Assembly: GCA_013115145.1 (NCBI GenBank)
Contig: JAAPAO010000340.1
Location: 1 to 37,926, forward strand
Reading direction: 5' to 3'
DNA: 37,926 nucleotides
Origin: Perkinsus chesapeaki ATCC PRA-425
Taxonomy: Eukaryota > Protista > Perkinsozoa
The notes under the pieces were generated by a model. That model saw only the letters and a program-made list of their open reading frames with translations, searched no databases and was not told the origin of the DNA. Of this stretch, positions 17,191 to 37,926 are shown piece by piece (position 1 is the stretch's first letter; each line of letters starts with the position of its first letter). The position numbers were made by a program, and so were the translations under genes.

Positions 17191-18194
17191 GCCTCACCAA
17201 CTGCGAAATGTGAGAAATTATTCCGAAAAATGTTTCAAATGTGTTAACGAATCATACCAAATTTCTGAAACCGTTTCAAAACCGAATTTCTCGCCCGAGA
17301 TATTTTTCATACCGCAGTGAAGATGATATGTAAGAAATGCCAAATGTTTCCCAGCTCCAACCGAGGGATTATTTAAACCAACACAACAATAATGATAGTC
17401 AACCACCACAGCAATTCGGTCAATACTACGCATTGCACTGGTCTATAGGGGGCGATTGCCGCCGAGATAATTGTTATCTAGACACTTTGAGGGTAAACAG
17501 TGCTAGACATAATTATACAATAACTTAGACCCCTAGATCAATCAGCATCATCAACTTGCATTCTCAAATGCTTGCATCAACAACTTCCCATTTTCTATGG
17601 GGACCTTCTGAGCTTGCAGCTTTGCCGCACGTGCACCTAAGATAATACCAAGAATTCATTCCAATTCGTGCCGGAAATCAGCGAAGAGAGTCCACCAATT
17701 TAGACTACCACGTCTTCAGGAATGCTGAAAGCTGAGACTTGAAAGGCATATTCAACGCTATAAAAGACCAATATTCTCCAAGCGAAGGCCTCAGGGCTAC
17801 AAATCTGATGGCAGGGTGGTCACAGAAACGTCTGGATTGATGTATCTTCATAGCTGTATCGGTTGGCTCCCCCCATAGTAAACATTTACAGGGTCTTCTA
17901 GTTCGTCATGCAGAAACGTGATTGGTTTTACGCGAACCCTGGTTATCTTACACGGTCATAAATTAGCTTGGATACGCCCTAGGATGCCCGAACTGGACGA
18001 TATATATGATTTTACAAGATGATCCCAATCGGTTGTGGACAACTGTCTTCACTTGCCAACCGTTATATATGGTTGCCCTTTTATACCCAAAAGCACTTAC
18101 GTTAAATCACGTATCGCATCTCTGACACTTTCCCGCACAAAACGGACAACGTCATGGCAATCAAAGTAAGCTTCATTGAATTGGAACCTAAAGG

Positions 18195-18751
18195 TAACCT
18201 AGTAACCTAATAACCTAATAACCTAGTAACCTAGTAACCTAGTAACCTAGTAACCTAATAACCTAATAACCTAATAACCTAGTAACCTAATAACCTAGTA
18301 ACCTAGTAAGCTAGTAAGCTAGTAAGCTAATAACCTAGTAACCTAGTAAGCTAGTAAGCTAATAACCTAGTAACCTAATAACCTAGTAACCTAGTAACCT
18401 AATAACCTAATAACCTAATAACCTAGTAACCTAGTAAGCTAGTAAGCTAATAACCTAATAACCTAGTAAGCTAGTAAGCTAATAACCTAGTAACCTAGTA
18501 AGCTAGTAAGCTAGTAAGCTAGTAAGCTAGTAAGCTAGTAACCTAATAACCTAGTAAGCTAGTAACCTAGTAACCTAGTAAGCTAGTAAACTAGTAACCT
18601 AGTAACCTAGTAAGCTAGTAAGCTAGTAACCTAGTAACCTAGTAAACTAGTAACCTAGTAACCTAGTAAGCTAGTAACCTAGTAACCTAGAAACCTAGTA
18701 AGCTAGTAAGCTAGTAAGCTAATAACCTAGTAAGCTAGTAAGCTAGTAAGC
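18195..18751. repeat. 8-bp tandem satellite, ~70 units, consensus TAA(C/G)CTA(G/A)
   Basis: Contiguous taacctag / taacctaa / taagctag / taagctaa units, with rare taaactag. Confidence 0.97.
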
Positions 18752-19009
18752 ACTATTTGTTTCTTCTTTGTTACCTAAGACCCCACTCGCTTCCTGGTAT
18801 TGTCTCTTCAGCATAAACATGCATTGGGGAGCTACTGGCTCGCCCTGGTCCTTCAAACATCATTCTACTGTACCTGCAGCAGATAACAACGACGAATAAG
18901 AAGAAGACAGCAATAATACAATTATTATACAAATAATCGCCAAGGAGAAAATGTTGACAGTAAATTTATAATTTTATTACAATGCAAATGCGTATTATTG
19001 GCACATAAG

Positions 19010-22000
19010 CTATCTAGCAGTGCCAAGGAATCGAGTCACAACTTTGAAGACCTTCATAGATGGGAGTGTGGAGTGTAAAAAAGCGCAAGTTTCATACGGC
19101 CTCTTCCTCTTCCATAAAATGCAGTTGATCGAAGAGTTGATCTACCGTGGTTCTTCTCGCCATTATTTCCGATCTCCAGCAAGCTTTATTAAAATGATTC
19201 ACCCCAGCTTACGTCGGCACATTAGTTATCCTACAGTGACCGTCAACATCATCATTATCATCATCACTTGCTTCCTCACTGCCACGATAATGTGGTGAAT
19301 TATGGGGTATTAAATTGACCACCAAAGGGAATATATCATTGCCTTTATTATCCTTAATAAGACAATCACTGTGATCATACCTGATTGAGCATGTTGGTAG
19401 CATCCAGCATCAAAAGCAATTCAAAGCTGTTATATAATGTTAATTATAATTGCGAAGCAAGCGAAGCGTATACTCTCAGTTTCCTAATACTTTGTGCGTG
19501 CGTGCGAACATTATCCAGCAGCTCGATGATCTAGTGGAGCTATCCACCATCCGATAGCTCTTGCTCCGGGTATACCAGGAAAGGTACGAAAGTTGGTTCT
19601 GATTATATCTTGAAGGTTTGCGGGCCAAGATATATTTTTTCCGCAGGAAAATTATCGGCCTGGGGATCGAGCCTGCGACCATCCAACAGAATTTACTGAT
19701 CATTCGCCGAGCTCTGTCCCTTCAAAAAGGTGTAGCAATTACCACATGAATGAACGTCAAGGTTACTGTATAATCAATATAATATGCTAACCATATAAAT
19801 GGCCCTCAAAAGACGTTCTAAGTCACTTCAAGCGCTAATCGTAGTGGTGGTATTCCCAACAATGCTCGACAGTAGCTTACAATGTGTAGTCATGTGACTT
19901 CCATTTCCTCATCCTTATCCTTGTCGATAACTCATATACAAAATCATTTACACTGCTGCTCGAGTGTGTGGGGAATAACCCCATGTCGCGATAGTCAGAA
20001 AAGAAGGCCACCATATCTTGGGTGCAATACTCCACCTGAGCCAGTGTGAAATTTTGCACAAATTCTGTCTCCTCGACGAACTGAGCTGTCGTATCGATCA
20101 GCTAAATAATTCTTAATCCCACCGGAAACCAATATATAAGCATACTAAGTACTAAAGCATAAGATACAGTATATAAGTATATTACAGTGAACTTACTATA
20201 GTTACGGAGCAAGCGGAGTTTATTATCTGGAAACGGATCATTTCGCCGTGCCGTGCGTGCGTACGAATTATTTCCCGATAACCAGAGCGAACTAGCTGAT
20301 AGTCTATACACGAAAAGATTTCCCTTTGTCTGAGAATACCTAGAGAAATTGCAAACTTTGAAAGCTACGGTGTGTTGAGTAGAAGCGGAAAAGCATTTTT
20401 TGCGGAAAATGCAGCCTGTGGGATTCGAACCCACGACTTCTTCTCCAGCTCATTACCGTCCGGGTGCATTTAATAATAGTCGTCAAATAAAGCGCTAAAC
20501 GTGCACTGAATATGGTAGAAGAGTTTTCTAGGAAATCACTATTAACTTCGAGCCCCTTAATTTGCGGCGAATTATCTGCGCACGATATCGTTTCGTCGCT
20601 AAGCCACTTCGTCACGAAGCCCTAGTAAGTAGTATTGAATTTCAATGCTAAGCGCCGCAGAGCCATTAGATTTTCGTGCGGCGTGGGAGCTCATCATCAT
20701 TAAATCACTTCATATGAACCTACCTCATCCCGGAGAGTCTGCATTAGATTGAGGGATACCCAGGACCATTTCTGGAATCTTGATAGTGACAATAATACCA
20801 CAGCAAGAACCATAACCTGACAACAAATACCTACACCGAACACTGAAATTTGACAACTATAATTAAAGGTTATAAACTAGCCATTTGACAACGTGACAAG
20901 GTAACTATTCAACAGTTTATCGGTTCGACAAATTGAAAATTTAATATTTATCAACTTAACAGTTTCACAATCACAACTTAGCCATTTTATTTAAGTAAAA
21001 ATTGTCACTAACAATGTAACAAAGTTAACAATTAAATGGATACTATCACCTATCAACTTCGTAGGTTTACTCCAACACGTGCGATAAATTTTTCCCTATC
21101 CCGAAAAATCGTAAATTTCCGGCGAAATTTCTTCCAATAATTTCCGTTCTCCCAACACCACTATACCCCCACGCCTCACCTCGATCGACACAGCCATCTC
21201 CCTTCCAGCAGCTGCAAGTGCCTCCACTGTGCCTAAAATAACTCTACTGAAAAATTTCCCAAAAAATTTTCCCACTTTTTTCCAGCCATAAAGTTCGTCT
21301 TTTTATAGTTCCTCTGTCCCAGCTATGCCACTCCTCCAAAGGCTGCTCAAAGTTATATCCACAACTCGTTCCAGGTCGCATATCAAAAGTATCTTTCAGC
21401 CGTTTCTCGAGAATCCTGTACGGATTGAGTTCCACCGGGCTTTTCTCCGGTTTGTTAATAAACCTCTCAAAGTCCATCACCAACGGCAAGACACAGTAGC
21501 CGTCAGACAGCAAGTGCGTCGTTTTAATGTACAAATAATTTACGTTCGCCCCAGCATTTTCGGGGCGCATCAGGAAAACTTGAAATGGTGGTTCGAAAGG
21601 ATATTCCCGCCAGAGAGCTTCCGTGGCCTTCACCGCGTCTCTAGTTCCGCTTCCCTTGAAGGTATACTCGATAACCATCGGCCCTCCAGCGTCACTGCGC
21701 ACCGAAATTCTCGGCCACAATTGGTAGACGCACCAGCTAAGCCATCGGCCGAACCTGGTTTCGTGCCCCCATCCGCGGAGATGGAAGTATCCAACAGCTC
21801 TGGTCAGAATTGAGATCGTGGAATCCATGTCGGCATCGATCGGATATGATCGAAGCGATGGATGCTTTTTAACAATCGCCTCAACCGCGGATTGAACCCG
21901 GGTCGTCTCCAATGGAGCGCTAGACTCCAGCAACCAGTCGCACACCGCACTTGTCCACAAGCTTTCATTCGTATAAACCGCGTACTCCTTGCCGCTCGCA

Positions 22001-25000
22001 GGCGACGTATGAAGAGGCTCAACTGCGCCGCTATCGACAACGCTGATCGCAGATTCTATTTTATTCGACAAAGATTGAAGACTCGTCCCGGAGTTCATCA
22101 CTTCCGCGACAGACAGACTGGCATCTACGAATTTGCACGCATGCGCACGCGAGCATATTTCAATTTTATCTCACCGAATTCCTTATTGATCTGCGCGGTT
22201 AGCAGAACAATGTTCAGACTCGACAAGCCCATAAGTGTCGTCTCGGAGGTCGGTGGCTCCCCCAGGATGCTTGTAAGGATTCGGACAACCTATCAGCCAT
22301 TGGTAAAGTCTACACCACTTCACGATCCAATCAGCGAAAGCCGAGAGCTAATTATGTCCTGGGCCTTCATCAATTTGTGCTGGCTTTTATTAATTAAAAA
22401 TAGGGAAGCTAATTCCTTAAAATTTTGAGAATTTGAATTCTTGGAATGGTCCAGTCATCATAGGATACTGTCACACATTTATAATAAACAATAATACTTA
22501 TGTGCTCTACCAAAGGTAGCATGCTCGACAGTAGGCCCTACTGAGCAGGAAATCTATTAATAGCGTTATCAATCAGTCGCTACGATCTTCATCGATCGAA
22601 ACGATTCATCAGTTACTTTTTATGTTATGAGGTGACTTGCTATAGATTCCTCGACCTCAATTCGACAAAGATACAAAATAGGTCAACAAGCATGCACCCA
22701 CCATTCACCTTATGTTCAACTGAATTGCCATTGTAACTGCTTTCATCGAGTATCTTTCGACCATCAACGCTTCCAGACGGGCTCACTTCCCCTCGTGAAG
22801 GAGTGTCGCTGCCACACGTCGATGAACTGGTATGACTTCCGACCATCATGTGCACTATAGGAGCTTCGATAGTATTACCGAAGGTCTCACTGAGCAGGAA
22901 AAATGACCGCGCGCCACAAAATTATTCCCACTTGATGCGACCGATATGCGTCCACCAGCAATCTTCGCAATACCAATTCCAAGGCTCATTGTAGAAGGTG
23001 TCCGAACAGCCGTATTTACTAGGATACCTAAATTGACATAATATCGAATCATCACGCTTCAACCTAAGATACTCTCCCAGCAGTGCGGAATGAATCCTAA
23101 GATTCAGTAAAACTGTAATAATCTCACTCCACACAAACACGCAGGTGTTGACGAGCCATAGATAACCCCCGTTCCCCTCCGAACACTACTGAAGCTTTCC
23201 GAAATGACCCAGAAAACTCCTTTTCATCTGATACCTTTCTCACTCGCTTTAGAAGCCCACCAATCGATTGAAAAAAGTATTGTGATAACCCCAGCATTTG
23301 TTGGGCGAGCTGGAGTGCTTTCATCGAACAAAGTTTCTAAAACTGCTGACCATCCTCCCAGTTTGTCAGTTCTAGAAATATTATATCCTCAATCCTTACA
23401 TTCTCCGGCATCGACTGCATGCCTTGTACTCTTCGGCAGCAGCAGCTCCACCACCATCATCATAACTCCTCCTGTCAACTTCACCCTTCTTGCACATCAA
23501 ACAATACACCCAATTCACTATCTTAACCATGGTCCAACAGGACCTAAAGAAGGAGCAACAACAACCTCAGAAAATGAATCGATATAGTCATCTACGATGA
23601 AGTCAAAACAGACAAGTTACCGAACCTCAAAGAAATCGGGGACTGAAAACGGGCAATGCTGCTGGAAAATATGTCCCACAACCAGAAGAACCTTCAAATA
23701 CAGATTTATAAAATAGTAAGTTTGAGAATCCAGGAATTGAGAGCTAGTGAATTTGCCGCGTCAACATCTCCAGTGAATACATATAATAATATAAATCATA
23801 CCGTATAGTGGCAACTGCCCGCACCCATTCAAACACCTATGTTAGAAAGGATAGAAATATCCCGAGAACTCCAAGAGACAACTCATAACCTCAATAACGA
23901 AATCCTTACTTCGACCTAAGATACTTATAAAGTTGCTCGAGATACCATCTCGACACTCCATCCACGCCCCATCTGCCGAAATATCCACCCCACATCTCTA
24001 CATCCTGCAGCAGCTGTGTCGGCCCTTGTACCAGTAAAGATACCGGCACCCAACAGAGGGCTCTGATGGGCTTACGACGACCAGACAGAAGTACGCCAAG
24101 CAAAGCCAGACCGCAATAGATGTACCACCCCAGAGGCCCGGGCACTTGCGTTAACAATATGCCGCCACCAAAACGACCAAATGGCACATAATAAGAGATA
24201 GTCTCCGCCACAGAGGGGTGAAGTAATGACGGAAGTATCCAAGGTAGAAGCGCGACTCTGCTGATGAAGGCTTTCAGGAATGCGATAGGGGACAGAGTAA
24301 ATAGTGTACAGATTGGCAATGCCAGGAGCATCTGAAAATTATTACATCTCAACTTGTCACTATGCCAGAAAATGTCTACGGTTCCATACATTCCTTCTCT
24401 AAGATGCCCTAAATGTTTCCTATCGTCAACCGTCATCATCCACACGCCTGCCCAGCGTCATCAATCAGCACCCAACGACGTGCACCCAAACATTCCCTCG
24501 ACGACCACAATTACTTCGCGATTGACAAAGCAAACTGAATTCTCACAAGAATTCACGAAAAATAAATATCTTGAGGGACTCTCCTCTAAAACCTTCGCAG
24601 TGCGTTCGGCAAAAGATACTCCGGAAGCCATAATGAACATCATGTCATTCAGGTTCTCCAACATAATTGTTCCGTCTCGCCTCACCATCAGTCCAGTCCC
24701 CTTTATCCTCCTATCCTCTATATCCTCCATGGTAGCCTTCCCTTTACGCTTCAGAGCCTCACTCATGTCCACCCGGCTCACGGACTCCACCAATAGCGGA
24801 CCCGACAACTTTCCTGTACCTTCGTTACGAGGCAACTCATAACTGAGAAGAAGAGAAAATAATAAAAACACTGAAATCCAGAAAGGATTTGTCAAACCAA
24901 TACGACTTCTATAGATGTGGACCTTCCTGGATCAAGTCAGTACGATTATGCCACTAAAGGCATTCATATGGTTATTATTAATTATAAAACAAAGCTTTCA

Positions 25001-28000
25001 CCAGCGGTCACTTTGACCTTTCTTACTTTGCCGGCAGTAAATGCAGGTGCTCCACGTCCATAAGAGGTATCCTACTCCTTACAGCAGCCAGCAGCCTACT
25101 GCCATTGATGCGGTCCTCACCGCTCGAATGGACGACAAAGAAGTGAAGCTCCCCTTTATAATTCACCACATGGCACTCCCGACCACCGAGCTCTTCGCTA
25201 AGTTCGTTCTGGATGATAACTGAAAGACTTTCCTACGGCAACGGATGCTCGAGAAAAAATAATCAATGCGAAACAACGGAATCTAGATTCGACTTCTCGA
25301 TGCTTTCGCATTACACCAACCACGCCAGCCCGGCAGTGTCCTAGGTGACAGCCATCTAGCACTAGTCCGTCAACCTATACTCTGGCCGAACAAAACATAG
25401 CATCCAAGTGCGCACTAGAGAGGATACCGCCTCATCAAAGATCCGCCAAAGATATCCGATACATGCCAGCTTTGATGATCAAATAAAGTAAGTGAACGGC
25501 AGCAGCTTTTCGTTAGGAGTTTTGTGAATCCTATCGGAAACCCGTCTGCCCTCAGGTAGGTCTCCCTCCTACCATCCATACATAAAATCTTATCGAACTA
25601 GTCTACACTTCCAGAGCAGAAAAGTAAATCTTAATAGGTTTATATTTTCATCTTAGTTGACCACATTTGTATACATAAATTAGATCGTAATTTATCGACT
25701 AAAACTATTTTCGAATATATCGAATATAATATATTTTTTTACTTCTATAACATACGCTATAATACTTTCCCATCTGCAGTGCCCTTACTCTTCCCGTCAC
25801 AAAACCCCAACATATCCATTTTCCCACGTAAATGTTTCCTCCTCACCTGTGTCGTGAAATGCTCCCCCCAACTTCACGAAATTGCCAAGTCGCCCGATGA
25901 ACTCAATTGTCTTGTCAGCGTTTATCCGCACCAGATCGTTCGTTCCTAGAATCATATGGCAGTCTCTAATGCACGCTTCAACCTACTATAGAATCTTATA
26001 CCACTCTTAACGATAAACTTTTCTCGGTTGTTTCGCTCCGCCTGTTCATCGCCATCAGCAGGAATATAATAACCATACGGAGTGACCATATCCCCTCCCA
26101 ACAGGAGCTCACCCATAATACACCCTCCCTGACAGACAGTACAAACTCCAACTCAAATGCTACTCCCCATCGATTCGGTTCATGTCAGCATTGAACAAAT
26201 GGCTATCTCAGATTACTCTCCAAGATTATCATCGATTTCTTTTACGAGCAATGTATATTTATCACATGCTTTAGGAGAATACACGCTCCTCGCAATTGGC
26301 AAGTCCAAACTCAGCTGCCCGGCGGCCGTAACCATCTCCCCCGAGCAACACAAACATTTTCAATAATACCGCGTTCTCTCCTTGAAGTTGCACTTCTAGG
26401 AGAAGCCATGTTCAGATTTCGATGAGAATCCCGGCAAGCAACCAGAGAGGGTTTTCAGGCGAAGCTACTTCATACCGATTTTTCCTCATCGATGCTATTT
26501 TCTTCACACCCCTCATATCAACCATCTTATAACCGAACATGATGGATAGAATTAACACAGTCGATTCATCCAACTCTTCTATATCAATCCTTCATCGAAT
26601 CCATTCGACCAGTTTTATCCTTTCATACCCCATCCCAATATAAATACGATCCTATCTATGATGATCCTCAATAATATACTATATCTATATTATCCTCAAT
26701 AATCTATATACACCATCCCCATATTCCCGTCAAAATGTGCTCCCAGAGGAAAATTAACTAAATTTTATCACCTCCGTGTTTATTATCATACTTCCTCCCC
26801 CCCCACTTCTACTACCTCTGGCGTATTATCATCAACATTATCAACATCAATCACCGCTCCATCAGTTACTTTGTATTTCGCATTAGTATCTCCTTTACTC
26901 CTTTTAGCGTAGAAGCTCAACCAGTACTCGCTCGCGATGAGAAGGTCAAGTAGTGTTATGTGATCAGCATCTACAGGGGTAGCACTAAGTCGACCTATTT
27001 AGTATCTTTCACGTCTACTAGTGATCCAAGTCGACTTATTTAGTACNNNNNNNNNNNNNNNNNNNNNNNNNNNNNNNNNNNNNNNNNNNNNNNNNNNNNN
27101 NNNNNNNNNNNNNNNNNNNNNNNNNNNNNNNNNNNNNNNNNAGTATCTTTCACGTCTACTAGTGATCCAAGTCGACCTATTTAGTATCTTTCACGTCTAC
27201 TAGTGATCCAAGTCGACCTATTTAGTATCTTTCACGTCTACTAGTGATCCAAGTCAACCTTTTAGTGTCTCTCACTAGTGATCCAAGTCGACCTATTTAG
27301 TATCTTTCACTAGTGATCCAAGTCATCCCCCCTGTCCTCCCTAATACCACTCCATTCATCAGCCAGTTCCTGACTCAACTTCTCCCCCCAAGATATCACC
27401 ACCAACTCCTTCCCATCCGCCACTCCGATTCTCTCAATAATATCATCTCTTCTCAACGTGCTCAAGACCGTCGGGACAAAGCCGCACACCAGGGTCCTTC
27501 TCCCACGGCTCAGTTTGCCGTGACCCAAACTCGCTAGCTCCATGAACCTCGCGGGATCTTTCTGAAGCGTATAATCGCTTCCTGGCAAAGCCACCATTCC
27601 GCCAAGAGAGATGCCTGAAGATGCACGTGAGCTAACCTCAAAAATATCTTTTCTATCATACCGATGCTCAGTATTCCATAAGCCGCCGATGACCAATGGA
27701 CCAATCCATTATGTAACATGCAGACGCTAGTGCCTTCTGGGATAAAATCGACAACTGTTCTTTTATAATGTACGAATTCATGGAGTACCTGAGGGAAGGC
27801 GCCGAGTGATGCTAAGTGGGGAATATACGGCTGAAAAGGGTCACGTAAGAAGAAGGCCCTGTCCAACGTTAGATATATACCCTTTTTAATTTTTATACCC
27901 TTAAATTTATAAAACCATTAATGACAGTCTAATCAGTCTTATACATTAATGAACGAGACTTCGCCGAGGGCCTAGCCAGTAACGTTTTCGCTTCACATCC

Positions 28001-29147
28001 ATCCTTGTGGTATCATGCTGACATATTCTCGAATTGGAGACCTTTACGCGAATCTCAACTGCTAAACCATCGATAGGATATCTCAATACATAAATAATTA
28101 TTATTATATATTAATACGCAGCCCACTGCTGGCCTCCCTCCCCAATACCCTTTATTACCATTCCGTGTGTAATAACAACACATTTGCTATAATTCACCGT
28201 AGTGGTACCTGATACCGCTCTCTCCTCTACGTTCCTTCAATTCCATATTACCCCCAGTAAAATGCAATCCTAATATAAGATCACGTCCACTTGGTATAAG
28301 CAGCTCCTCTTGCTCCTCCTCTCCAAGTGCCATCAGCCCATCCAGACTTTCAGCACCCGACATGCCTTCCCCTCGGACAGAAATATCTTCCACGATGATA
28401 ATGCACGGTTCAAGCTTCTCTCTAATATACGCATTCCTAATATCTTGTTGCTCTTTATTCGGCAAATCCGTGCCTATAATATGACTCTAATATACCTTTC
28501 CATCCAGCCCCTTACCCATAGCCGCCAGAGGCAGCCCCAGCGCAGCACAGGCCACATAGACCACATACCAGGTAACACTACGGTCCATATAACATGCTGA
28601 AAACAACTACTAGACGCTCTACGTAGGACGGCGCCTCGAACCCGCAATCATTTTCTGATAGTCGAACTGGGCAATGCCTCCTTTTTGTCGAAGTCTCCTC
28701 CTGATCCCCTTCGCCAGAGTCTCGGCTCGGCACCAAAGGTCGGCGTATCTAAGCTTGAAGAGTGTTAAAAGCTCATTAATAGTATATAAATATTAAATCA
28801 ATTTATCTTGGTTTAAATATTAAATCGCCACGACTCAGCCTTGACTTGAATATCTTCGAAAAGCTTTCCTAGCCCAACCATTCTAGCATTTGCATCATTG
28901 TCCATCAGAACATTGAACTACAACCCTCCCAGTACCCTCTCGACCCCTATCAATAGTTAAGTCACTTACGTCATGCAGTTAACAGGTCCTGTAGGGCTGC
29001 ATTCGAAAGCCGCTACCCTAAAAAGGCATTCCGGTAGGCACGGTGCGCTCCGTAAAAATACCTTTCCTTCATTTGAGATTCACTGGCATATTTCCGGAAC
29101 GTCTGAGCAACGTTGATTGGACCGTGACGGCCTTCGCTGATGTCCAT
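19010..29147 (-). CDS. NRPS-like single-module protein: adenylation - membrane/Cys-rich insert - carrier (T) - terminal condensation; roughly 1,600 aa by exon sum
   Basis: Phase-consistent exons: 29147-29062, 29017-28970, 28748-28642, 28596-28516, 28473-28252, 28208-28159, 27788-27662, 27614-27348, 26970-26816, 26125-25987, 25945-25847, 25219-25027, 24842-~24496, ~24447-23910, [23910-22880 not resolved], ~22881-22709, 22289-22175, 22124-21276, 21232-21180, 20816-20724, 20035-19881, 19380-19213, 19173-19098, 19051-19010 (stop). Motifs in order: MTYADL (A1), FTGGTTTVNYSK (A3), GELLLEG (A6), YRTNDL (A7), GRLGNFVKLGG (A8), LPRNEGTGKL (A10), GLSSL (T), IVKKHPSLRS and THLLSDG (C). Confidence 0.8.
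19440..19710 (-). mobile_element. Diverged SINE-like element in an NRPS intron (19880-19381)
   Basis: B-box-like GGTCGCAGGCTCGATCCCCAGG, internal (GCAC)n and a GCTTCGCTTGCTTCGC-AATTATAATT tail resembling the tail at ~14545-14580. Confidence 0.45.
20200..20450 (-). mobile_element. tRNA-derived SINE-like element in an NRPS intron (20723-20036)
   Basis: GTCGTGGGTTCGAATCCCACAGGCTGCA plus a body matching 14331-14560. Confidence 0.65.
22060..22730 (-). other. Phosphopantetheine carrier (T/PCP/ACP) domain
   Basis: SVEHK|VVRILTSILGEPPTSETTLMGLSSLNIVLLTAQINKEF|DASLSVAEVMNSGTSLQSLSNKIE has carrier helix spacing with the attachment Ser in GLSSL. Confidence 0.75.
24800..29147 (-). other. Adenylation (AMP-binding) domain exons of the NRPS-like gene
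   Basis: A1-A10 core motifs are recovered in the correct order across 13 exons; also VISWGEKLSQELADEW and LLDLLIASEYWL. Confidence 0.88.
26987..27324. repeat. 41-bp minisatellite spanning an assembly gap (N 27047-27141), inside an NRPS intron
   Basis: Unit agtatctttcacgtctactagtgatccaagtcgacctattt occurs on both sides of the N run; terminal units are shortened to 35 bp. Confidence 0.95.
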
Positions 29148-34755: not shown

Positions 34756-37700
34756 TCAATATGCATACCAATACGGCTGGGTAATACTTCTAGCCTCATC
34801 AACAGGGGATAGTTGATGATGATCCTTGTCAACAGCATCATATAAATGAGAGTACTCCAACGGCAAAATATTATAAGCATTCTCACGAGTAACTCGACCG
34901 CCAGGATGAACTACATCATACGTATGATCTCCACAAATAGACCATATGTGGCATAGTCTAAAAGGTTGGGCCAGCTTCTTACTCGGGAAGTAGACGATAA
35001 CCGGTTGCCCAACTATATAATCAACCAATTGATTCTTAGCTTTTTTACCAGTTTTAGAGCGAATGTTCTTAAGGGTAGCTTCCTTCAATAACCTCCAATG
35101 TAGCGTGAAGAAATTAGAGCGTATAGCATTAATCGATCTTCCTGGATTGAAGTGAACATCGCCAGCGTTACTCAGATGACCAAAACTAGAATCCGTAGCA
35201 CGACTATACCCATAAGCTAGCTGATCAGGTGTAACAGGCGTAGCACGTCCATCCAAACCATAACAAAACTTAGTAATAGGGCGCAAATTCAACATGGACA
35301 TACATTGCATTATTATCATTTCCAAGTAACTGTCCTGACAAGATACATCACCAGTTGCGTGACGTAAAAGAGCACGCAAGCGTCTAGCACCAAGATGATG
35401 GAGCTTCTCACCTCGACCCCCCTCCCAAGGAGAGCGAGTTGAAAGATACTCCACCCGAGCGCCCAATAACTGACGGCACTTTTCAGAGAAGCGAGAGGTT
35501 GTAAAATACTGTGCTCGATCCAACACAATAAGTCGAAGGCCTCCTCTCAGCAGTTGAATATATCTCAGAGCTTGTAAGATGGCCTCATGGTTCTCGGATG
35601 GCAATAGTTTCCAAGTAGTATGTGAAGTCAGTAAACACGTACAACTTAGAACTTTGCGTTTCCCGCCAATAGAGAATGCATCCACAAAGACCTTCCAATA
35701 TGCAGGGTAAGACGATAAGTTAGCATCAGATAATTGACCAGACCAACCAACTGAAGGGGGTAGTGCCCAAACTCGTTTCGCTCGTGTTACTTGACATACC
35801 ATACATTGTTTACATAAGCGTCGCGAATCGGCGATCAAAGCCGGTAGATGGTAGTCTGTGGCATACCCAACTGCACACCAACCACGATTCACTAAATCAG
35901 TCAAACAACCATTCACGAGAGTGTCTTCCTCAGACGTAAGTTTCACGGAGATGGAACGGTCACCATTAACTGATATCGGGGACAATGGAATCTCTACAAC
36001 CTGGTTGACGGCATCATGACATATAGTCGAAGGAGTCACCAAGTCGGCGGCATACACACAATGACCACCGATATAAGCACGGCTAGTACCACAGAGGCAT
36101 ATATCTAGGGCATCGATAAGTGTACGTCCTAAAAGAACAACCATATCCGAACCGTAACATTTAAGATTCTGCACTTGCAAAACACATAAAGTCACGGGTA
36201 CTCGACATCGTACTACATCGCCATGCAGTGACACTATATCGAGATAACACGGAACAACATAACGTGCGGAGGTCGTAGAGGAGTCAGCGAGCTCGATCTC
36301 AGCCGGCTCAGACAACCGTTGCTTATTGAAGGGGATGTTCTCGTCATTTCTAACAAGTAAGTAGCTTCTACCAGCAGCGGAGTCCACCAAAAAATTAGCT
36401 GTCAACTTAGCTTTCAAATCGATAGAACTTATATAACCTTTCAGAATAACCTCAGAAGGAATCGCCGACGTCACCGCTCGAGAAGGTTCATCGGGCCAAA
36501 CATGAAGGGCTTGTCGATCCTTCGTTACCAGTCGAACTCGATCAGAGGATTGAGCTGATGTTGTCGCCCTTAACGGCTCTGTATAAACCCATGTTCTGAA
36601 CAAGGCACTGTCGATATTAGCTACACGATCGTCGCCAGAGGTAGCGTTCGTGAATCCAGCGAAGAAAATAGGGTTTCCTCGACGGCTAGTGGCTTTAGAG
36701 AGCCCGTCGGCACCAATGGCCTGCACTTTCTCAACGGACCGACAGCCTTTACCAGAGAGTCCCCATACACGGGCATACTTTTTCGCCCAGTCAGCGAGAG
36801 GGACAGAGTTTCTATCATCAATCTGCCGTATCCAGTCTGGCCTTGAGGACGGCGGTCTATTAGGGTCTCGTTGTACTACTTGTTCGGGACCATCAACCAT
36901 CGACGCATCTCTTTCAGTGCGACATGTCTGTCGGATAACACCAACAATAGAGCGATTGGCTGAGCGGCCAACACGCTCCAATGGCAACGCTAGCTCCCAA
37001 TCTTGAGTCTCGGAACCGGATTCATCTGGGCCGGACATATAGCTTTTGATCTTGTCGATAGCTTTCACACGAATATCACCAGGGAGCCTACCCATAATTT
37101 TATCCACAAGTCTTCGTCGCTCGGACGAATCACCTTTATATACATCCATATAAAGATGGTAAATGGTACTACAATGCCGGAGGAAGCTGTCCACAGACTG
37201 AACACTCTCGAATCTCAGCTTCGAAAGTTTACCATCATAGTTGGTCTTGAGCACATCTCTTTGGGCGAATTGGGCTAGGAGTTCCTGCCGGATAGTCTGC
37301 CAGCGGTAGCCGGATGACTCTGCAATCTCACTTGCAGCATCCACAACTTCTACGCAGTCTCCAAAGCTTTGCACCAACTTGTTATAACAGGATATGGTAG
37401 TAGATTGATAAGGCTTATATCCAACATTGGAAACCATCCTACCAGCACCTATCTCAACCATGAGGCCCTCCACCATAGAGTAGTGGCTTTTCAGCCGATA
37501 AGACGCTACCAATTCAGGTACCGTCAGCTTACTAACTTCAATCGGTCGACATGCCCTTATAATCCTCGATGGTCTTGTCGTAGCCTCTGCTCTTAGTCTT
37601 TTCTCCCTGACAGTGTCATCAAGCCCAGGGGAAAGATCATCGAACTCCTCAGCATCGCCGTCGTCAATTCCTGGGAACACTGAGCTGTCATCGTCATCGT

Positions 37701-37878
37701 CGCCGTAGGCATCGTCTTCACCACGATTATCATCAGCATACTGTTGATCATGAGTGAGCATCGGGAGAGCATCGCGCCGACCGTGCCGGGCTGAGAAAGA
37801 TGACTCAGCTTCGGTGATAGCACGCCGATTGAGCATCCGCTCTGCTACCAAATCTAGCGGTGTCCGCATATGCAACAT
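34756..37878 (-). CDS. Gag-protease-integrase polyprotein (~1,040 aa, uninterrupted)
   Basis: Single intronless ORF; first ATG at 37878; no YxDD RT motif anywhere. Confidence 0.85.
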   Translation of the reverse strand: MLHMRTPLDLVAERMLNRRAITEAESSFSARHGRRDALPMLTHDQQYADDNRGEDDAYGDDDDDSSVFPGIDDGDAEEFDDLSPGLDDTVREKRLRAEATTRPSRIIRACRPIEVSKLTVPELVASYRLKSHYSMVEGLMVEIGAGRMVSNVGYKPYQSTTISCYNKLVQSFGDCVEVVDAASEIAESSGYRWQTIRQELLAQFAQRDVLKTNYDGKLSKLRFESVQSVDSFLRHCSTIYHLYMDVYKGDSSERRRLVDKIMGRLPGDIRVKAIDKIKSYMSGPDESGSETQDWELALPLERVGRSANRSIVGVIRQTCRTERDASMVDGPEQVVQRDPNRPPSSRPDWIRQIDDRNSVPLADWAKKYARVWGLSGKGCRSVEKVQAIGADGLSKATSRRGNPIFFAGFTNATSGDDRVANIDSALFRTWVYTEPLRATTSAQSSDRVRLVTKDRQALHVWPDEPSRAVTSAIPSEVILKGYISSIDLKAKLTANFLVDSAAGRSYLLVRNDENIPFNKQRLSEPAEIELADSSTTSARYVVPCYLDIVSLHGDVVRCRVPVTLCVLQVQNLKCYGSDMVVLLGRTLIDALDICLCGTSRAYIGGHCVYAADLVTPSTICHDAVNQVVEIPLSPISVNGDRSISVKLTSEEDTLVNGCLTDLVNRGWCAVGYATDYHLPALIADSRRLCKQCMVCQVTRAKRVWALPPSVGWSGQLSDANLSSYPAYWKVFVDAFSIGGKRKVLSCTCLLTSHTTWKLLPSENHEAILQALRYIQLLRGGLRLIVLDRAQYFTTSRFSEKCRQLLGARVEYLSTRSPWEGGRGEKLHHLGARRLRALLRHATGDVSCQDSYLEMIIMQCMSMLNLRPITKFCYGLDGRATPVTPDQLAYGYSRATDSSFGHLSNAGDVHFNPGRSINAIRSNFFTLHWRLLKEATLKNIRSKTGKKAKNQLVDYIVGQPVIVYFPSKKLAQPFRLCHIWSICGDHTYDVVHPGGRVTRENAYNILPLEYSHLYDAVDKDHHQLSPVDEARSITQPYWYAY

Positions 37879-37884
37879 GCTAGC

Positions 37885-37926
37885 TGGCACCGGGTGGGAT
37901 TCGAACCGGGGTTGCCTGACTGGCAG
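37885..37926 (-). tRNA. tRNA-like 3' half, cut by the window edge; possibly degenerate
   Basis: CTGCCAGTCAGGCAACCCCGGTTCGAATCCCACCCGGTGCCA has a canonical T-loop (GGTTCGAATCC) and ends in CCA, but the T-stem pairs poorly. Isotype cannot be called. Confidence 0.4.

Follow-up and report, generated by a model that had tools for sequence, protein, structure and literature searches.

An intact, intron-rich gene of Perkinsus chesapeaki for a single-module NRPS with a predicted membrane insert between its adenylation and carrier domains

Does one minus-strand locus of Perkinsus chesapeaki, a parasite of clams, encode a single NRPS chain in which a hydrophobic and Cys-rich insert separates the adenylation (A) domain from the carrier (T) and condensation (C) domains, and if so, what might such an enzyme do? 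The window analyzed here is the whole 37,926-nt stretch of DNA; its ORF list shows the locus only as fragments, the longest minus-strand ORF being 285 aa, just as an earlier note on this DNA had remarked. That note, made from the letters alone, proposed a hidden gene ending at 19010 in a probable alveolate parasite. The word hidden was overstated, because a public gene model exists, NCBI hypothetical protein FOL47_006145 of P. chesapeaki (P0001, 1309 aa); the exact match to this protein bears out the guess at the host, which is a perkinsid, and rejects an animal origin, which had also been considered. P0001 threads exactly onto the minus strand from 29147 to 18097, as 23 exons with all 22 introns GT..AG, placing the 3' end about 0.9 kb further on than proposed.

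The public model needs two further exons, which we added to the P0001 threading by comparison with the orthologue in P. olseni and with the family alignment. Exon 23 (19213..19380; 168 nt, 56 aa) and exon 24 (18775..18873; 99 nt, 33 aa) are in frame, have GT/AG boundaries and are absent from FOL47_006145. The exon 23 product shares 70% identity with aa 894-948 of the P. olseni protein; its counterpart there measures 165 nt, has identical phase and belongs to a homologous block in the family alignment. The P. olseni counterpart of exon 24 is also 99 nt, and the two exons combined show an amino-acid identity of 0.76. The refined gene (18097..29147, minus strand, as are all coding features given below) has 25 exons and 24 GT..AG introns, with a product of 1398 aa. 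Exon sizes and phases of the P. olseni orthologue match those of the P. chesapeaki gene, including the stretch 23910-22880 that the earlier note could not read, which consists of three exons (23543-23400, 23027-22932 and 22889-22709).

The locus contains an assembly gap (27047..27141) within intron 8, whose flanking exons are 27614-27351 and 26970-26816. The gap lies inside a 41-bp minisatellite, with copies at 27142-27310 and about 26999-27046 and with stop codons in every frame. Read depth is elevated over the minisatellite, and no DNA unitig from three runs bridges the gap, unitigs ending at 27016 and 27281. Across the gap the protein is colinear with its homologues and no block is missing; the gap thus costs no coding sequence. 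Its presence, together with the finding that neither RNA run searches nor read mapping to the stretch yielded RNA covering the gene, would suit a decaying or unexpressed copy in a repeat-rich region. Such a pseudogene is nevertheless improbable, since 25 of 25 exons are open, the splice sites are all canonical and every family-invariant catalytic residue is retained. Moreover, dN against P. olseni is 0.07-0.68 in every region and lies far under dS; dS is saturated throughout, so that only this inequality can be stated and no dN/dS ratio. The gene is intact and intron-rich, and it codes for a stand-alone single-module NRPS.

The A domain (aa 1-545, exons 1-13, 24782..29147) was recognized by Pfam, by profile comparison and by its invariant residues. 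Pfam AMP-binding matches P0001 at aa 34-397 with 47.5 bits (cut-off 29.9; E 1.4e-12). The family profile matches NRPS A domains in the PDB at E 1e-46 to 1e-29, ranked above acyl-CoA ligases, and on these sequence comparisons we assign the domain to the NRPS type of the ANL superfamily. The motifs A3 FTGGTTT (28261-28198), A4 HWSSAAYG (27698-27675), A5 LLIASEYW (26944-26921), A7 YRTND (25990-25935), A8 GRLGNFVKLGG (25895-25863) and A10 GTGKL (24820-24806) are all present, and T180-G181-G182 of A3, E343 of A5, D431 of A7, G445-R446 of A8 and K536 of A10 are invariant in 15-18 members. On specificity our claim is confined to one position, that of Asp235 (GrsA numbering) in the A4 FD motif, which we take to be the residue binding the alpha-amino group. 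Opposite the FD-motif Asp of 8xjz and LgrA, the window protein has Ser and relatives have Ala or Pro; because of this replacement, a standard alpha-amino acid is an improbable substrate.

At the other end of the protein, the carrier domain (T or PCP; aa 856-930, 22024..22717) is recognized by Pfam PP-binding, which matches P0001 at aa 858-917 with 23.5 bits (cut-off 20.8) and the P. olseni protein with 31 bits, and by a PCP-C fold. Its GLSSL attachment motif (22229-22215) holds Ser882, invariant in the family alignment and the predicted phosphopantetheine site. The terminal C domain comprises aa 931-1398 (exons 19-25, 18100..22023). Of the three HMMs that the earlier note had named, AMP-binding and PP-binding exceed their cut-offs on the protein itself, but Condensation stays below its cut-off on P0001 and gives no match (the large exon alone scores 10.1 bits). 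Single exons give only weak PP-binding and very weak Condensation matches, because they are too short. Among relatives, Condensation is matched (E <= 0.01) by 9 of 19, with 6e-13 as the lowest E-value.

Profile, predicted fold and motif together identify this C-terminal part as a condensation domain. The family profile matches PCP-C didomains in the PDB at E 7e-8 with the catalytic motif aligned. An AlphaFold2 model of the P. olseni orthologue (pLDDT 75.6, pTM 0.80) retrieves PCP-C and PCP-E structures in Foldseek (E 1e-17, TM 0.5-0.66). The T-C half shares its predicted fold with the bacterial PCP-C didomains of fuscachelin (7kvw/8fx7), TycC (2jgp) and LgrA (6mfw); at an identity of 12-15%, the two align over the catalytic motif and over the RD/GxF region downstream of it. 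The motif itself is THLLSDG (21519-21499). Tested against HHxxxDG, the second His and the Asp (H1100 and D1104) are invariant across the family alignment, and Thr or Ser takes the place of the first His in the whole family. Unlike in canonical bacterial PCP-C NRPSs, the chain ends with the C domain, and no A-T acceptor module follows it.

Between A and T lie about 300 residues that comprise a hydrophobic helical bundle and a Cys-rich module. The bundle (aa 575-690, 23993..24694, made up of exon 14 and the preceding end of exon 13) was delimited by hydropathy and AlphaFold2. Its conserved hydrophobic segments are aa 575-591, 595-611, 632-660 and 668-684, and hydropathy and the AlphaFold helices allow four or five membrane passes. 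The Cys-rich module (aa 751-800, 22883..23446) spans exons 15 and 16, with CSRC (23419-23408) in the first and CEDC (22969-22958) in the second; in 18 family members the four cysteines C760, C763, C786 and C789 never vary. This CxxC...CxxC pattern is probably a zinc ribbon, although Pfam gives zinc-ribbon matches on the stretch only below threshold and only in relatives. AlphaFold2 models the insert as long helices of membrane-spanning length with a small beta knuckle or beta-hairpins, at low global confidence (pTM 0.45).

The helices could instead be a soluble spacer or oligomerization domain, the enzyme then being a cytosolic A-T-C protein with a long structured linker, in which the zinc ribbon could serve dimerization. 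Two of the segments have a modest hydropathy of 1.1-1.4, and the positive-inside rule sits uneasily with the topology: the final two helices are joined by a basic RRKPIR loop that fits poorly with an even number of passes returning the chain to the same side. Against this, the four or five segments, each of 17-29 residues and with family means of 1.4-2.0, keep their hydrophobicity in distant members where their sequence has diverged, the modeled helices are long enough to span a membrane, and some members have further hydrophobic segments at the same place. We therefore regard a soluble spacer as unlikely, and from hydropathy and the model the insert is predicted to sit in the membrane.

Searches with the insert returned little. 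The helical bundle has no Pfam match; the fold model of the helical and zinc module gave no credible match in AFDB clusters, the PDB or the ESM Atlas (TM-scores < 0.3); and an atlas search with the TM exon gave generic membrane look-alikes only (scores <= 0.80). A profile search with the module alone found only a P. olseni fragment, and no stand-alone relatives at that sensitivity. The arrangement of A, helices plus zinc module, then T was found neither in the literature nor in libraries of solved and predicted folds, and our literature search, in agreement with the earlier note, met no published account of a characterized example.

The least conserved region relative to P. olseni runs from the TM exon to the T domain (42-53% identity). 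This dip, with the lack of RNA found for the locus, is what might be expected if gene prediction had falsely joined two adjacent genes, one encoding A and the helices and the other T and C. We give this the least credence of the alternatives considered here. P. olseni has the same order with matching exon phases, and the order A, about four hydrophobic helices plus the Cys4 module, T, C recurs in a P. chesapeaki paralogue and in the dinoflagellate Effrenium. In contigs of intron-poor uncultured eukaryotes the whole layout forms single uninterrupted ORFs (1476 aa in L001 and 1380 aa in L003), and the transcriptome-derived relative P0042 carries the full architecture. A, Cys4, the T serine and HxxxD occur on one chain in 18 of 18 aligned members. 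Pfam, profile, fold and family alignment thus uphold the single gene, strand and domain order that the earlier note had read from the letters; the two separate transcripts that it had set against this reading fail at the family level, because the intron-poor relatives encode everything in one ORF. By sequence, the layout is conserved in perkinsids and dinoflagellates. With the whole family as profile, a word-indexed search returned, beyond four true members, only generic bacterial NRPSs. The beta-propeller gene that adjoins the relatives in L001 and L003 has no counterpart in the window.

Among characterized enzymes, the closest analogues are the soluble single-module A-T-C NRPSs of fungi. These include AneB, ThmA and FlvI, with DrcB as an A-T-CT variant, and in the AneB motif QHxxxD the first position is dispensable, the His and the Asp both being essential (PMC10720950). 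Fungal and Perkinsus enzymes alike place a single A, a T and a terminal C on one chain, and both have a catalytic motif that dispenses with the first His, QHxxxD in AneB and (T/S)HxxxDG in the Perkinsus family. The fungal C domain passes the acyl group from T to an alcohol or amine that is free, presumably as it would here by analogy. The likeness is one of architecture, and there are differences: the fungal enzymes are soluble, have T right after A and activate alpha-amino acids, whereas the Perkinsus enzyme has the insert of about 300 residues and is missing the alpha-amino-binding Asp.

A second comparison is with Pls/PosA, which like the Perkinsus protein (its membrane state being predicted) are single-module membrane NRPSs whose A domain is of the NRPS type and whose length is similar to the roughly 1300-1400 aa found here. 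The A domain of Pls (7wew) is indeed among the PDB matches, and a Pls-like membrane homopolymer synthetase, iteratively polymerizing amino acids, could be imagined. As the earlier note had stated, however, Pls-type TM segments follow A-T: in the Pls/PosA member P0144, A occupies 62-388 and T 543-605, with TMs from 623. In Pls, three TM pairs are interleaved with non-canonical C-like/hexapeptide regions, and there is no CxxC, no Cys4 module and no HxxxDG. The Perkinsus enzyme has one canonical C domain, has its candidate TMs before T and lacks the amino-acid-binding Asp. In hhalign the family matches P0144 over the A domain only (6-499 vs 55-524); because A alone aligns, the enzyme is not a Pls relative, and we hold iterative polymerization to be very improbable.

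We put at roughly 70% the probability that this intact gene encodes a single-module A-helices-Cys4-T-C NRPS of about 1398 aa working as follows. The A domain would adenylate a carboxylic acid, and the T domain would then hold that acid in thioester linkage to its phosphopantetheine arm on Ser882. Using His1100 and Asp1104, the terminal C domain would next pass the acyl group to a free acceptor, at its amine or hydroxyl, and so release an amide or ester; this step is modeled on the soluble fungal enzymes AneB and ThmA. The helical bundle is most likely a membrane anchor, with both catalytic halves on the cytosolic face; so anchored, the reaction would take place beside an acceptor bound to the membrane, or beside a route of export.

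A bolder proposal, which we offer tentatively and with well under even odds, is that bundle and zinc ribbon take an active part in the enzyme's function, binding a membrane lipid acceptor or forming an export path, and that the family is a new eukaryotic class of membrane-integrated NRPS. The family would then make a lipid-linked or secreted amide or ester, and the class would be common to perkinsids, dinoflagellates and related uncultured protists. If the membrane part does act in catalysis or export, this would be a second, independent coupling of an NRPS to the membrane after Pls, and would indicate a still undescribed metabolite that is conserved across Myzozoa. Perkinsids and dinoflagellates have many unexplained lipids and toxins, and to our knowledge a product has been assigned to hardly any of their NRPS-type enzymes. 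In transfectable Perkinsus, the family offers knockout and metabolomics work a defined target.

Only short ORF fragments are listed between 18000 and 30500 (the longest on the minus strand is 285 aa), with NRPS motifs recognisable in the minus-strand stop-to-stop frames. Exon 21247-22170, the largest, served as a phmmer query against the whole library. It retrieved P0001, a 1309-aa protein at 98% identity, along with ~38 more remote relatives 1200-1700 aa long. NCBI lists P0001 in Perkinsus chesapeaki as hypothetical protein FOL47_006145; the source is a perkinsid, which bears out the earlier guess of an alveolate parasite. The gene had been described as hidden, which is true of the ORF track but not of public annotation, where this gene model exists. 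The longest ORF of the window lies elsewhere on the minus strand (34756-37890, 1044 aa) and matches no Pfam family at E ≤ 0.01.

Exact threading of P0001 on the minus strand gave 23 exons running from 29147 to 18097, all introns being GT..AG; this moves the 3' end from 19010, as the earlier note had it, to 18097. The P. olseni orthologue P0040 (68% identical, its N-terminus cut off by the end of its contig) has two extra blocks, matching window positions 19379-19212 and 18881-18768. Splice-site enumeration found an in-frame exon for each on the minus strand, at 19380-19213 (168 nt) and 18873-18775 (99 nt), both absent from P0001. Their P. olseni counterparts (165 and 99 nt) agree with them in position and phase, the remaining exon sizes and phases likewise correspond, and the block that P0001 lacks in the family alignment is exactly that of these two exons. 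The refined gene has 25 exons encoding 1398 aa; its introns are either short (41-50 nt) or long (184-688 nt). Compared with P. olseni, dN is 0.07-0.68 in every region while dS is saturated, a pattern that favours a functional gene; over the two added exons the amino-acid identity is 76%. The last intron contains an 8-bp microsatellite, (AAGCTAGT) x 31.5, perfect-looking, at 18500-18751. Short stretches in the introns and exons (26468-26488, 28097-28115 and 28207-28230) recur in other contigs from read sets of the same genome, which suggests small dispersed repeats.

A run of Ns (27047-27141) falls within a tandem repeat of 41-bp units in which every frame has stops; the repeat is part of the intron that separates exon 27614-27351 from exon 26970-26816. 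In the family alignment the residues encoded on its two sides (a WGE...W block, then LLDLLIASEYW) follow one another without a break, as they do in every homologue. Hence no coding block has been lost, and the alignment supports how the two sides are ordered and oriented. The gap was not bridged by the DNA unitigs from three runs, which end at 27016 and 27281, so physical continuity depends on protein colinearity alone; read depth in the DNA runs is raised over the repeat.

The proposed order on one chain, A-[membrane + Cys-rich]-T-C, recurs in 18 full-length relatives, which share an A domain, helices (membrane-spanning by prediction), a Cys4 module, the T serine and HxxxD. The named members come from P. 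olseni, from P. chesapeaki itself (the paralogue FOL47_008165) and from the dinoflagellate Effrenium voratum. Separate A-TM and T-C genes are ruled out at the family level, because P0009 and P0013 are single uninterrupted ORFs (4431 and 4143 nt); their contigs are compact, intron-poor, eukaryotic metagenome sequences with dynein, Med31, SDH and mitochondrial carrier genes as neighbours. The tree has three groups. In the first, a Perkinsus clade is sister to these uncultured eukaryotes; the second is of dinoflagellate type; the third is divergent but keeps the same long A-to-T spacer. The paralogue, on another P. chesapeaki contig, has 1692 aa, a long C-terminal extension and, by motif scan, one CxxC only. 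In the two intron-poor metagenome contigs, L001 and L003, the gene at L001 9034-9948 and L003 9088-9966, immediately upstream of the family member, encodes a ~300-aa beta-propeller with hits to Beta-prop_ACSF4/PQQ_2. These loci are syntenic and count as a single observation, and the window has no counterpart of the gene. ACSF4/AASDH is an animal A-T-propeller NRPS-like protein.

Pfam AMP-binding covers residues 34-397 of P0001 (E 1.4e-12). Searched against PDB, a profile built from 15 A domains of the family ranked NRPS A domains (8xjz, E 1e-46; LgrA, 1e-45; GrsA 1amu, 1e-29) above acyl-CoA ligases. Invariant residues include the P-loop TGG, Glu343 (A5), Asp431 (A7), Gly445-Arg446 (A8) and Lys536 (A10). 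In A domains the alpha-amino group of the substrate is bound by the Asp of the FD motif in A4. Opposite this Asp, two alignments place Ala in the family; the window protein has Ser, and some relatives have Pro. A standard alpha-amino acid is therefore an unlikely substrate.

PP-binding also exceeds its cut-off on P0001 (858-917, 23.5 bits against 20.8; 31 bits in P. olseni), and Ser882, in GLSSL, is invariant. Pfam Condensation stays below cut-off on P0001 but matches 9 of 19 relatives at E ≤ 0.01 (best 6e-13). The family T-C profile matches PCP-C didomain structures (E 7e-8), and the catalytic motifs line up in that alignment. For the whole T-C half of P. olseni, an AlphaFold2 model (pLDDT 75.6, pTM 0.80) matches PCP-C and PCP-E didomains (Foldseek E 1e-17). 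The condensation motif is THLLSDG, with invariant His1100 and Asp1104 and Thr or Ser at its first position family-wide. Five proteins of the uncultured-eukaryote clade (P0004, P0006, P0008, P0009, P0013) carry a second conserved HxxxDG motif, MHA(M/Q)RDG-like, ~120 residues past the catalytic one; the Perkinsus proteins lack this second motif.

Within 575-690 of the A-to-T insert lie four conserved hydrophobic segments (575-591, 595-611, 632-660 and 668-684; family mean hydropathy 1.4-2.0), followed by the invariant Cys760, Cys763, Cys786 and Cys789; dinoflagellate-type members have an additional pair of CxxC motifs. Pfam gives sub-threshold zinc-ribbon matches only. AlphaFold2 models the insert as long helices, then small beta-hairpins and a helix (pLDDT 68, pTM 0.45), with no credible fold match in AFDB clusters, PDB or ESM Atlas, and a profile search with the module alone matched only a P. 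olseni fragment. Hydropathy and the model predict four or five membrane passes. For A and T to lie on one face, so that A can load T, the number of passes must be even; the basic RRKPIR loop joining the last two helices fits such a topology poorly.

As the earlier note stated, Pls places its TM segments after A-T (Pls/PosA: A 62-388, T 543-605, TM pairs from 623 on), whereas the window family has helices and Cys4 between A and T. We rejected a Pls relative: hhalign aligns the A domain alone, Pls/PosA lacks CxxC and HxxxDG, and the TM layout differs. Literature searches turned up neither an A-TM-T-C enzyme nor any account of this family. Mechanistically closest are the fungal single-module A-T-C enzymes AneB, ThmA and FlvI. 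These use the terminal C domain to esterify a free alcohol, and the fungal QHxxxD motif needs its His and Asp but not its first position (PMC10720950).

The original observation is confirmed once the 3' end is corrected and the two exons are added. The A-insert-T-C architecture is real and conserved, and it defines an uncharacterised, lineage-restricted family whose enzyme, judging from its domains, is most likely loaded with a non-amino carboxylic acid, which it would pass on to a free acceptor at a membrane, forming an amide or ester.
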